NCBI GenBank assembly: GCA_013416795.1
Contig: RQSC01000154.1
Coordinates: 1-47,658, forward strand
Source: Prasinococcaceae sp. CCMP 1430
Taxonomy: Eukaryota > Plantae > Prasinodermophyta
DNA: 47,658 nt
Direction of reading: 5' to 3'
Shown: in pieces, positions 13 through 32,349 of the stretch
Layout: every line of letters starts with the position of its first letter
How positions within the stretch are numbered: position 1 is the first letter of the stretch
Position numbers and translations under genes: made by a program
Notes under the pieces: model-generated
The model's input: the letters and a program-made list of their open reading frames with translations, nothing else
What the model was told of the DNA's origin: nothing
Database searches by the model: none

Positions 13-2207
13 GTGCGTTGTTTTTTTCCCGTAATTTTGGCGTTGAGGGGAGCGAGTGCCGTCCGCAGGGCGAGCGGCCGCGCCGGCGTGGGAGGCAGGG
101 CTGGGGGCGCACACGCCCGCGCGCAGCCTCTGTGGACGAGCGATACCCGGGCTGGTGAGTCAGCTCTTGTTCCAAACGAGGAGTGGCACAGCGCGCTCGC
201 GCGCCTTCGGCGGGACGGCGTCGGCGAGGTCGACGCCAGCACGCGTGCGGCGCTCGTGGAGAGCGGCTTCGCTCCGGAGCAGCCATGCTTCATCGTGGGC
301 CCGCGTTGCCACCCACGCTGTCAGCAGCCGGCCCCTCCAACACCCGTGGAGGCACTCTCGCGCGTCTGCCTAGCCGCGCTCCCGGACGACGGCGAGACGC
401 GGCTCTCGGCGTGGCAGCTGGAGGTGCCTGCCAATTTGGATGCAGGATACACTAGTGGCTACAATGGCAGCGTCGGCGCGCGTGACTCGGATGCTGGAGC
501 TACCGGAGGTCCAACTCAGCGTTTCGGCGTGCCCGCGGTCATCGGCATCGGACCTGCCAAGAGCGCCAGCACTGGGCTCTTCGGAATGCTCTATCGCCAC
601 CCGGCGGTGCCAGAACCTGTGAAACCCCCGAAAGCTGGGGGCGCGGGAGGAATCTTCGAGCCAGGACACTTCACGAGTTTCGACCACATCTTCAGCATGG
701 GACTGCCGCACCTCGCGAGTTACTTCCCCGTCGCTTCGGGCCCTGCCGCATTGGACGAGCGCGAGCGCGTGGCACGGGGCAAAGGCCTGCGCGAGCGCGT
801 CCAGATGGATGCCCTGTCCGCTCGGGCGATCGCTGACCACGTTGGCTCACGCGTGACAAGCGACGCAACGCATCGCCTAGCTGCGATGCATGCGGCAGCG
901 GTTGCAGCCCCCCGACAGACGGTCACTGCTGGCGGCGGCACGGTGGCCACACCCAGCGCGCCAGAACTGACGCGCGGCGCCCCGCTCTTCGCCGAGAAGA
1001 GTCCATGGTACATCAGCCACCCCCTTGCGCCTTACCGATTGCACGCGACGCTGCCGGGCGCCCTGGCGGTGGCGACCCTTCGGGACCCAGTCGAGCGCGC
1101 ATTTTCCGGCTTTGTACACACGAACAAGAATCGCTTCGCGAGGGGGCTGGGGCCACTCATGCCTTTCAATCAAACGGTCGAGATGGCCATTGCGGAGGTC
1201 GAGCGCTATCGCACGTGCCGCGATGCGACGTGGCCGACGGCGGCGGCAAGCGCGGGCGCTCAGGCGGACACGTACCACGCGCTGTTCACGAGTGATGGCG
1301 TCTCGACGCGGACGCTCCAAGAGATCGATGAGCACATTTGGTACGCGTGCGGAGACTACGCTGGCTTCGATTTTACGCACGTGCGCAATCGCTTCTCGGT
1401 GCGTGCGCCGTGCGCCTATGGCGGTGGCCATCGCCCGTCGCGCGCGCTGGCGTGTCCGCTGCTTCGAGCGCGTGATCGCGCCGGGAGTCACTGACCGGTA
1501 CCTGAGCACACGGCTACGCCCCCCGCCTCCCCCTCCACATGCCACTTTTGATGACGCAGGCGCCTGTCGATGAAATCGTGTTCTATTCCCTGTATCACGA
1601 GCATTTGCCGCGCTGGAGACGAGTGCTCGGGAACCGGCTGCGGATCGTCTCGGAGGGCGATCTGAGGAACGACGCAAACGCAACCATGAACTCGCTGGCC
1701 GCGAGCCTGGGCCTTGCGCCTTTCGATTTCAGCAAGGGAGGACTGGGTTCGCCCAACAACAAGACAGAGGACATTCTCCGCCGCGCCGCACGGGTCAACA
1801 ACGTCAACAAGGGTCGTGGGGAAGGCCGGGGCGGGCGCCCTCCCGGGCGGCGAGGCGTATGGGGCGGTGGCGCACTGGCTGCTGATGGAGGGCGTCACGC
1901 AGGCCACCGCGCGGGCTCACGCCGGGCGAGCGCCGGCGGTGGGCGAAGGCGCGGCAATGACGTCAGCGACGCCGCGCGACGGAGGCTTCTGCAGCAAGCT
2001 CTCCCTCCCCGAAACCATCATCACGTGGGCGAGCGCGCAACGGCGCTCGGTACAGCAGGCGTGTTGCGCACCAGCCGCCCCTTCACCGACCTGGACACCC
2101 TGCGCGATTCGGCTGCAATGGCACGGCTGCGCGCGTACGTCAGGGTCGTTCCCGCAGGCGTCAGCACTGACCCCGCGCTGCCAGAGAATGCATGGTTGAG
2201 GGACTGA
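13..2207 (+). CDS. PAPS-dependent sulfotransferase (heparan-sulfate O-sulfotransferase-like fold); 5' end uncertain or outside the window; intron 1399-1559
   Basis: 5'-PSB-like motif VIGIGPAKSASTGL and 3'-PB motif LRDPVERAFSG in ORF 13..1494. A GT at 1399 and CAG ending at 1559 (phase 0) join it to ORF 1539..2207, which carries SLYHEHLPRW..LRIVSEGDLRND..LGLAPFDF, typical of the sulfotransferase C-terminal half. Confidence 0.8.
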
Positions 2208-2294
2208 GCGGCACAGCGAGCGACGCCCGCCCCCCCTCCCCGCCCGCTCCGGCCTTCGTCTCATGTTCACGGCTCCTTTCTGGCCATCAGGCGA

Positions 2295-2731
2295 CATTAT
2301 CTTGGAGGGGGTCTCGTGTTGCCTTTAAAGTCACATCTTACGGTGAAGGGGTTGAAACCCTTTAAAACCTGAAAACTAAGCTTTGACCCAGGCCTACGCA
2401 AAATAGACCGGGTTGGGTGGGTGAGCTCGTGTGCAGACCCTCCTCTGACCCGATAACCCATATTAACCGAGGCTGAATATGCCATTATCTTGGAGGGGGT
2501 CTCGTGTTCACGCCGCGGGGGTTGCTGCGCGCGACAGCGCGCAAAGCAACAAGAGTGGCACACGCCGCGCGCGCGCCTCCTGCGCCAGATATTTTGATTT
2601 TTGGCCGCCCAGGCGCGTTCAGGGAACGCGCTCGGGGAACGACCGGCCAACACTGCAGTTCCACACGCGCTCGTGTGCAGACCCTCCTCTGACCCGATAA
2701 CCCATATTAACCGAGGCTGAATATGCCATTA
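2295..2731. mobile_element. Putative miniature split-direct-repeat element, A1-x-B1-A2-y-B2
   Basis: Exact 26-bp repeat at 2295-2320 and 2483-2508. Exact 63-bp repeat at 2425-2487 and 2669-2731. B1 and A2 overlap by CATTA, and CATTA is also found at both outer ends. The repeats are directly visible; mobile-element status is inference. Confidence 0.55.
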
Positions 2732-3357
2732 AAAAAAGAGGTCGTTGAACTCTTCCACGCTTCTTGACGAGCATCGAACCCAAAAAAATCTGTGAGCCGG
2801 TCCGCGAAGAATTGCAGGCTTTTTGACGTGCGTCGAACAGCGCGTCGGCCGGTCGGGCGAAGGCATTTACGCCCGTTCCACAGCCGTGCGGAATATCTAT
2901 GGCGAATGCATCCATTACATTGACCGCGTTTTTAAGTTTGTATGGTCTTTGAGACTGAAGAATCGCGGCGATGCGAGAATTGCGCTTGCCATTCCGTAGA
3001 GTACGCGGTGCGCGTGCGCGAACGCCGCCGAATTCAAACGTCGGATCGCGCGCGCCCGCAAGCGGACGCGCACAAGGCTTCTTTGAACTCCGCTGAGTTC
3101 GCAAAAGGGCTCGGTTCCGCATTTGGAAGAATCGCGGAAGGAGGTTTTGGCGCGCCGCGGCGGGACGCGGCGCGAGCGCGAGGGAGAGTCGTGTGCGTGG
3201 CGACGTGGAGGCAATGTCAGGCTAAGCGGCGGCGGCGGCGCCGCGGCGCGTGCGGCCGCGCGCTGCAGACGCGGCCAAGGTCGGAGGGGGTGCTGGGGGG
3301 CAGCATGACTCGACGGCGCAGCGTCCGGCGCCACCGGCGGGCTCCCGCGCGCTGAGT

Positions 3358-4734
3358 ATGCGGCAGAAGCACCCGCTGCGCATGTCAAAGCCATTTCGCC
3401 GCCCGCAGGGGGCGCGCGCAGCTCCGCGCACGGACGGCGCCGGGAGCGCTGCCAACGGCGTGTTTGCTGCTGCGGCGCAGGCCATCTCAACCTCCGACGT
3501 GCCGCTTCCGCCGACCGTCAAGCCCGCAGACGCGGAGGAGGATTCTGCGCCCGTGGCCGCGTCTGCGGATGCGCCAGACGAGCCCGTACCCCGCACCGAG
3601 CGCACCGCCGCGTCCGCGCGGTCCGCGGAGCCGGTGCCGCAGCCTCAACGGCGTGCGGGCTCGGCGCGGCGTGCGGGGGCGGCAGGCAAGTCGAAGCCGA
3701 GGCGCACCAACACCGTCACGAACATGCTGGCCACGGCCCCGCGGCGCCATCCAAAGGCTGTGTTCATTGGCTCGCGTCCAGATGGGGTGACGGTGGGGTC
3801 GATGCTCAAGGCCGACGGGCACGAGGTGGGAGTCGCAGGCGTGCCAGCTGATGTGACGGAATTGGCGAAGGGCGTGCGCACCAGCCCCCCTGAGTCGCTG
3901 GTATGCCTGGCGGCCCTCGGAGGCGACGAGGAGAAGATTCAGGCGAAGGTTGGCGCGCTCCGCTCGCTCGCGACCGCGGCAGCGGCGGCGAAGACGCTGT
4001 CGGTTGCCGTGGTGGCGCTCCCTTCGGCTGAGGAAGTCGGGGCGCACCGATGCGATGTGGCCGAGGCCGCCGCCGAGGCCCTTCTCGAGGGAGAGGGAGC
4101 GGTGGATGCGCTCATCGTGCTCGATGAGGTCGCCTGCTTCGACACGCCCTTCGTGCTTGCCGAGCATGCCGGTGGGCTGATGCAGCTCCTGCGCGGCTCG
4201 AGTCGCGCGGACGCGCGCAGGGCCCTCCGCGGACGGGCTGTCCTGGGCGTGGGCAAAGGGCCAGCCGCAGAGGCTGCTCGAAAGGCGCTCGCCGCCTGCG
4301 CAGTCCCGGAGACGGCCATGCCTCGCTCGGTGGTCTACTCCATGCACGGGTGCGTGTCGATTGCCGCGGCCGACGAGGTGGGGGCAGTAGTGCGGACGCT
4401 CGCGCACCCGAACGCAGTCCTCGCGTTCGACTCGACGCTCGCTCCAAAGGGCGGAGAGAAGGGCATGGTGGTGATTGCCCTGGCGTCACGCTTCCACGGC
4501 ATCGGCAATGGCTTCCTTGCCGACTCGGCGCGCGCGGCCGCACTTGCCGAGCTGGCCATGGCCACCCCCGGCATAGACAGGCCCATGCCCAAGCTGCAAT
4601 ACGAGGAGACCGCTGTGCACAGCTTCCTTTCGCAGCGCGCGAAGGAGCGCGCGAGCGACTCTGCGGGCTACCTGCGGAGGCACAGCGAGGCGAAGGGCCG
4701 TGCGGCGTCGTCGCTGCTTGACGACATGCACTGA
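3358..4734 (+). CDS. Highly divergent FtsZ-fold protein (ARC3-like FtsZ domain) with degenerate GTPase motifs and a long low-complexity N-terminus
   Basis: Colinear similarity to FtsZ: KAVFIG, LVCLAALGG, LSVAVVALPSAEEVGAHRCDVAE, VDALIVL, ADARRAL..GRAVLGVG, AAEAARKAL, VGAVVRTLAHPNAVLAF, VVIALASRF. First in-frame ATG is at 3358. Confidence 0.75.
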   Translation: MRQKHPLRMSKPFRRPQGARAAPRTDGAGSAANGVFAAAAQAISTSDVPLPPTVKPADAEEDSAPVAASADAPDEPVPRTERTAASARSAEPVPQPQRRAGSARRAGAAGKSKPRRTNTVTNMLATAPRRHPKAVFIGSRPDGVTVGSMLKADGHEVGVAGVPADVTELAKGVRTSPPESLVCLAALGGDEEKIQAKVGALRSLATAAAAAKTLSVAVVALPSAEEVGAHRCDVAEAAAEALLEGEGAVDALIVLDEVACFDTPFVLAEHAGGLMQLLRGSSRADARRALRGRAVLGVGKGPAAEAARKALAACAVPETAMPRSVVYSMHGCVSIAAADEVGAVVRTLAHPNAVLAFDSTLAPKGGEKGMVVIALASRFHGIGNGFLADSARAAALAELAMATPGIDRPMPKLQYEETAVHSFLSQRAKERASDSAGYLRRHSEAKGRAASSLLDDMH

Positions 4735-31951: not shown

Positions 31952-31979
31952 CCGCGGCGCGCACTAGCATTCGCGCGCA

Positions 31980-32049
31980 CCGCCATCCGCGCGCACCGCC
32001 ATCCGCGCGCACCGCCATCCGCGCGCACCGCCATCCGCGCGCACCGCCA
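31980..32049. repeat. 16-bp minisatellite (CCGCCATCCGCGCGCA) x4.4, running into the gap
   Basis: Units at 31980, 31996, 32012 and 32028, partial at 32044, degenerate copy near 31945. Confidence 0.9.

Positions 32050-32349
<300 letters not shown>

Follow-up and report, generated by a model that had tools for sequence, protein, structure and literature searches.

A probable head-to-tail pair of short non-coding mobile elements downstream of a sulfotransferase-like gene in Prasinococcaceae sp. CCMP 1430

Described systems and the structure of the locus

Helitron2 elements carry the 5' arm of an inverted repeat 0-2 bp from their 5' end and the 3' arm 20-30 bp from their 3' end, just upstream of a hairpin; they make no target duplication, and tandem copies of them are known (PMC3627910). 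Non-autonomous elements of the Helitron2/Helentron type (HINE, DINE-1, Helitron-N of Chlamydomonas) also occur in green algae (PMC3627910, PMC4067079, PMC5148889). The DIRS/PAT/Ngaro elements are defined by split direct repeats as the architecture of the element itself, together with a reverse transcriptase (RT) and a tyrosine recombinase (YR) (PMC4157794).

The locus described here is a 437-bp block in a contig (RQSC01000154.1) of the green alga Prasinococcaceae sp. CCMP 1430, which a sequence-only reading had proposed as a candidate miniature element of the DIRS kind. I consider it, with a probability of roughly three in four, to be two members of a family of short, non-coding, non-autonomous mobile DNA (about 330 bp in the full form and roughly 5-12 copies per genome) that stand in a precise head-to-tail tandem. 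Judged by its layout the family resembles Helitron2, but I do not count it among the Helitron2 elements. Nor do I place it under DIRS/PAT/Ngaro, a placement that is largely refuted because split repeats appear not to be a property of the family as a whole. The insertion is real, but it is a fairly ordinary transposon and not a miniature DIRS-like retroelement.

The window, meaning the whole 47,658-bp stretch of DNA that was analysed, is compact eukaryotic DNA of 68% GC. Repeat and pattern searches recovered both pairs of direct repeats from which the block had been recognised, A (26 bp, at 2295-2320 and 2483-2508) and B (63 bp, at 2425-2487 and 2669-2731), the two copies of each being 100% identical, as well as the three CATTA motifs at 2295, 2483 and 2727. 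Shuffled sequence produced no A/B repeat matches (0/100), and no further copies of A or B were found in the 47.6-kb window, either with up to 3 mismatches allowed or by sensitive blastn. The two intervening segments, x and y, have the lengths originally given for them, but they are not unique, both being multi-copy by contig depth (Table 1).

The borders of the units (T2297 and A2484 for the first, E_x; T2485 and A2728 for the second, E_y) were set by a pair of occupied and empty alleles at an independent locus, L001, described below. Because the borders were set in this way, the outer CATTA motifs are partly host DNA, the host supplying CA at the left border and TTA at the right one. E_x and E_y abut head to tail with zero nucleotides between them. 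Neither the fold of E_x (z 0.03) nor that of the junction between B1 and A2 (z -1.1) rises above shuffles. Segment y folds far better than shuffles (z -3.4), with two GC-rich hairpins at ~2521-2553 and ~2607-2623.

The units have no coding capacity, and the earlier view that they require an enzyme supplied in trans is therefore upheld. For a 73-aa ORF on the plus strand zero relatives were found, and exact look-ups of the ORFs of the window and of those internal to the L001 copy gave no record. Searches with Rfam (E up to 5) and ARAGORN gave neither an RNA family nor a tRNA within the element or near it, and ribozyme or retrozyme, snRNA-like and tRNA-SINE identities were dropped accordingly.

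Table 1. Features of the insertion and its immediate host surroundings, in window coordinates.
Feature	Position	Strand	Remarks
Host 3' UTR of sulfotransferase-like gene	2208-2296	+	between stop codon 2205-2207 and insert
E_x, first unit, 188 bp	2297-2484	+	A + x + B; the 329-bp form minus y
5' terminal block A1	2297-2320	+	again as A2 at 2485-2508; begins TTATC
Segment x	2321-2424	+	104 bp, 47% GC; multi-copy, 5-9x flank depth
3' terminal block B1	2425-2484	+	again as B2 at 2669-2728; ends CCA
Inner features of B1	AGACCCTCC 2435-2443; GATAA 2452-2456	+	complementary to 5' end
Hairpin of B1, CATATT(11 nt)AATATG	2459-2481	+	weak: junction fold z -1.1
E_y, second unit, 244 bp	2485-2728	+	A + y + B; apparently another subfamily, with a short stand-in for x
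Segment y	2509-2668	+	160 bp, 67.5% GC, GC-rich hairpins; multi-copy, 9-12x flank depth
Host target directly 3' of insert	2729-2738	+	TTAAAAAAAG; empty alleles TTAATAACAG or TTACTAACAG

Occupied and empty alleles in environmental contigs

Other copies of the element were reached by using a spurious minus-strand ORF that runs across it as a protein query. The query matched one predicted protein, on a 1059-bp Tara Oceans scaffold (L001) whose minus strand carries a single 329-bp unit, at 369-697 of the scaffold, in the order A-x-y-B; A and B occur once each, and an internal B-A junction is absent. A second search with the L001 protein led to P0002 on two contigs (L002 and L003) that represent the L001 locus without the element. 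The occupied allele reads GCGCGG/TTATC...GCCA/ATAAAAAG and the empty alleles read GCGCGG/ATAAAAAG in a rechecked alignment, so that the copy was inserted between the G and the A of GCGCGG^ATAAAAAG. These borders cannot be shifted either way, and no base is repeated relative to L002 and L003. It follows that the mobile unit is A...B with the termini 5'-TTATC...GCCA-3', that nothing is duplicated, that CATTA is not involved and that the A-run is host DNA; the unit has no terminal inverted repeats. CATTA had been proposed as the core of integration, but it is not required: although present in the empty site of the window, it is absent from this second target. Taking the two occupied/empty pairs together, there is no target duplication, or at most one of 3 bp (WTA) with one mismatch.

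Compared by blastn with the L001 copy, E_x is 99.2% identical in its first 127 bp and 96.7% identical in its last 60 bp, and in the MAFFT alignment the two copies share an identical x (2321-2423 in the window). E_y has 92% identity to the L001 copy over 212 bp and is ordered as A, then 15-18 nt matching the tail of x' (a diverged variant of x, described below), then y and B. From these alignments E_x and E_y appear to be different internal-deletion variants or subfamilies of one family. Both A copies of the window differ from L001 by one common base (TTGAGG in L001 versus TTGGAGG), and both B copies have two common substitutions relative to it; the ends of the two neighbours are therefore more alike than those of distant copies. 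Closely related sources would account for this, as would local gene conversion or a dimer formed in a single event.

For the window's own locus the protein query was a minus-strand ORF that extends from the right flank into B. It returned two predicted proteins whose right-flank and left-flank peptides are directly fused. Three environmental contigs, L004 (6326 bp), L005 and L006, align to both flanks of the window with the whole block absent, and the junction reads GGCGACATTAATAACAGAGG in L004 and GGCGACATTACTAACAGAGG in L005 and L006. Removal of the 432 bp at 2297-2728 from the window leaves GGCGACATTAAAAAAAGAGG, which has the same length as the empty alleles and one CATTA; an empty site with a single CATTA had been predicted, and these three contigs supply it. 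The borders at this locus are ambiguous within CATTA. The L004 contig matches the window flanks at 98.4% over 2.2 kb and at 99.2% over 2.9 kb. Recency of the insertion, formerly argued from the identity of the repeats, is borne out by the emptiness of the locus in L004 despite 98-99% flank identity over ~5 kb, which implies a young insertion, or at least one for which very close relatives are polymorphic. Thus, closely related wild algae differ in whether the window locus and the L001 locus are occupied or empty, and with no coding capacity in the units the block is indeed a mobile non-coding insertion. No allele with only one of E_x and E_y was found among the recovered contigs.

The block starts 89 nt past the stop codon of a sulfotransferase-like gene, and the window also contains a Mod(r)/VPS37 gene. 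In contigs of two probable RNA runs a GT..AG intron of the sulfotransferase-like gene (1398-1558, 161 nt) is spliced out, and after it the frame continues in ORF 1539-2207. A contig of a probable RNA run spans 1914-2387 at the depth of the upstream gene and stops within x at 2387. Judging from this contig, the 3' UTR seems to stop within E_x, which would then supply the mRNA 3' end of the gene in the sequenced strain; empty alleles must use another mRNA end. On the other side of the insert, the intergenic stretch 2729-3211 has only 91% identity to L004, versus 98-99% in the flanking genes, and the 8 nt beside the insert show two differences between window and L004 (TTAAAAAAAG versus TTAATAACAG).

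Copy number, target and origin of the tandem

Contigs of four public runs were placed on 1200-3800, and copy numbers were taken as depth ratios. The flanks are single copy (depth ~292 in run X1 and 33 in run X3), x (2305-2423) has a depth of 1586 in X1 and 282 in X3, and y (2526-2618) one of ~2600 and 388, the stretch from y to B standing at 2336. The ratios to the flanks give a family of roughly 5-12 copies per genome, and y, formerly regarded as a unique spacer, is its most repeated part. A high-depth contig of the sequenced strain joins 2423 straight to 2524, and the 100 bp that it skips are B1, A2 and the first 15 nt of y. Read-derived contigs break at repeats, and the B1-A2 junction is beyond their reach. 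Other copies of the family depart into unrelated flanks at 2298, 2732 and 2735. Furthermore, a single-copy X3 contig carries, at a further locus, an E_y-type copy with an internal deletion, and a loose contig end has a diverged, longer x' variant after A that runs into the same ACGCCGC motif as E_y. Segments x, y, A and B therefore make up a dispersed family with several structural variants.

One family copy, the one that departs before 2298, lies beside very AT-rich DNA (~17% GC over 30 nt, in a genome of 68% GC), which may derive from an organelle, a virus or some other foreign source; no match to this flank was found in viral contigs. Exact patterns of A, B, x and the AT-rich flank gave no hits in JGI metagenome contigs, IMG/VR viral contigs or GTDB genomes. 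To the right of the insert, at 3192-3226, the contigs of both DNA runs enter and leave a 33-nt stretch with unrelated sequence on either side, and because they diverge on both sides this piece, which lies upstream of an FtsZ-like gene, is common to another locus. The interval 3288-3635 is covered by X3 contigs and absent from X1 contigs, which may be a GC-related drop-out of one library set.

The four known right flanks begin TTAA, ATAA, TTAA and TTAA, which is striking at 68% GC, and the left flanks (GACA, GCGG, GTTAA) are dissimilar. With WTAA at the start of every right flank and varied left flanks, insertion is orientation-specific: the units insert in one orientation directly 5' of a host (T/A)TAA. 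Such an insertion would leave the TTAA intact beside the 3' end of the element, and since nothing is duplicated or destroyed, the WTAA next to a resident copy could be used again. A second insertion at a reused WTAA, with the two units arriving one after the other, would be the simplest route to a base-perfect head-to-tail pair. Alternatively, a circular copy might cross over with the resident copy within A, or a tandem donor might be copied as a single piece, and either event would give the same tandem.

Mobilisation and the alternatives

The enzyme supplied in trans may be one that nicks and joins single strands, of the rolling-circle (HUH) kind. I favour mobilisation of this type tentatively, at a little below even odds, because the layout resembles that of non-autonomous Helitron2/Helentron-type elements, and HUH elements characteristically insert precisely and in a fixed orientation beside a short motif, without duplication. 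DDE transposons are disfavoured because inverted termini are absent, and target-primed retroposition because there is no added tail or duplication and because y contains T-runs.

The likeness to Helitron2/Helentron-type elements covers several features. The family is short and non-coding, has asymmetric ends and a 5' T, inserts precisely into a T/A-rich target without duplicating it, and occurs as internal-deletion derivatives and as tandem copies. TTATC stands at nt 1 of the unit and GATAA 28 nt from its 3' end, 2 nt before the hairpin; TTATC and GGAGGGGGTCT are complementary to AGACCCTCC...GATAA, after which come the hairpin CATATT(11)AATATG and CCA. A 5' arm complementary to a 3' arm placed 28 nt from the 3' end, directly before a 3' hairpin, would in its geometry fit the Helitron2 arrangement. 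However, the arms here are short, interrupted and statistically unconvincing, since the score of A against the reverse complement of B was matched by 270 of 5000 shuffles and by 178 of 5000 random 63-mers of the window, which puts it barely above chance. The 3' hairpin is likewise weak, with a 6-bp A/T stem, a junction fold no better than z -1.1 and p ~0.04-0.05 for hairpin and complementarity, and no convincing 5'-terminal hairpin was found in A with the start of x or y. The target differs as well, lying 5' of WTAA here and between two T in Helitron2/Helentron.

Other elements share part of this picture. As in IS91/ISCR elements and Replitrons, insertion is orientation-specific, a short target motif abuts one end, there is no duplication and the right end has a hairpin (PMC10288648). 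Replitrons have direct terminal repeats of ~6 bp, whereas in the present family the recurrence is limited to TTA, of which the right-hand copy belongs to the host. The locus might represent a miniature eukaryotic transposon of an undescribed kind, free of inverted repeats and target duplication, that inserts exactly 5' of WTAA by means of a non-Helitron enzyme (for example a Replitron-type Rep or an IS200/IS605-like enzyme) and forms hetero-dimers through circular intermediates or reuse of the undamaged target. I consider this unlikely.

Several familiar classes were tried and rejected. Canonical Helitrons (Helitron1) have 5'-TC and CTRR-3' ends and insert between a host A and T; the ends here are TTATC...GCCA and the L001 copy sits between G and A. 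MITEs of DDE transposons have terminal inverted repeats and a target duplication of fixed length; here TTATCTTGG and the reverse-complemented 3' end TGGCATATT do not match. A solo-LTR was set aside for the lack of TG...CA ends and of a 4-6-bp duplication at L001, a piggyBac-like element because the left TTAA is absent, and a PIF/Harbinger-like element because there are no inverted repeats.

The units might instead be integrated as circles by a tyrosine recombinase, in a Crypton-like manner or as in the integration step of DIRS-type elements. The B-A junction of the circle would recombine with a short target core, and two rounds would give attL-E1-attP-E2-attR, the arrangement seen in the window. 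The window locus has one CATTA when empty and three when occupied, as expected for a common core, and the absence of inverted terminal repeats agrees with this reading; Cryptons too have no inverted repeats and are flanked by short direct repeats that are partly target-derived. In addition, the left junction of L001 has TTA and the right ATA, which a heteroduplex in a 3-nt overlap could explain without an extra mutation. However, the target GCGG^ATAA has only TA in common with the junction CCA^TTAT; a common core that shrinks to TA sets the L001 locus apart from Cryptons and is very little for an overlap region. No gene for a recombinase is known here either, and this route of integration seems rather improbable.

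A SINE-like retroposon, placed by target-primed reverse transcription at a TTAAAA-type nick and with the A-run as a short poly(A) tail, would agree with the full-length 5' ends and with the fact that every known right flank is A-rich after the element. It is nevertheless very improbable: the empty alleles have the A-run too, which makes it host DNA, neither locus has a target duplication or deletion, the T4 and T5 runs in y would stop RNA polymerase III, and there are no tRNA or Rfam matches.

The order of the tandem rests on one assembly, which has an N gap elsewhere, and the real locus might in principle contain one unit to which a 100-bp internal stretch (B, A and 15 bp) was added during assembly or polishing. 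In keeping with this, the assembly is not flawless, given the N gap and a 112-nt poly-G run in the window; the contigs of all runs contain only 0.90-0.92 of the sampled words, the junction-specific 31-mers making up ~9% of the stretch; and the junctions are bridged by no listed contig. However, links of low depth between high-depth repeats are lost when contigs are built, so the missing bridge proves nothing, and mis-joining of dispersed single copies could not create a base-perfect joint between the 3' end and the 5' end of two complete units. An artefact is accordingly a highly improbable explanation. The imperfect region itself (31975-32348) consists of a 187-N gap (32050-32236), with a 17-bp tandem repeat of CATCCGCGCGCACCGC-like units before it and the run of 112 G after it; it looks like a scaffolding or sequencing artefact, and because of the gap the assembly is not gap-free.

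I give just as little credence to the original proposal, in which A1-x-B1-A2-y-B2 is the architecture of one miniature PAT/Ngaro/TOC1-like retroelement, copied from RNA and integrated at CATTA. The order of repeats with its internal end-to-end junction is real in the assembly, the block as a whole has been inserted into a site that has a single CATTA when empty, and, as in PAT/Ngaro/TOC1, there is no classic duplication. Unlike in those elements, however, the split repeat is confined to the window copy. At L001 the member that moved independently is a plain A...B unit, in which A and B each occur once and the internal junction is missing. In the high-depth contig of the sequenced strain x runs directly into y, and y is multi-copy. 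CATTA is missing from the second target, there is no RT or YR gene in the window region and no RT, MT or YR gene near the element, and no evidence points to an RNA intermediate, a reverse transcriptase or a tyrosine recombinase. A single element with split direct repeats is thus not what the family displays. The locus also serves as a warning, in that two adjacent deletion derivatives of one family can mimic the split direct repeats of the DIRS order.

Read as a tandem of two such derivatives, an apparently exotic structure becomes a clear insertion polymorphism, of which ocean metagenomes show both the occupied and the empty alleles. Borders known to the base, together with a target next to WTAA, offer a handle for finding the mobilising enzyme. 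Finally, the locus points to a small family of non-autonomous transposons that is active, now or recently, in an early-branching green alga with a compact and very GC-rich genome.
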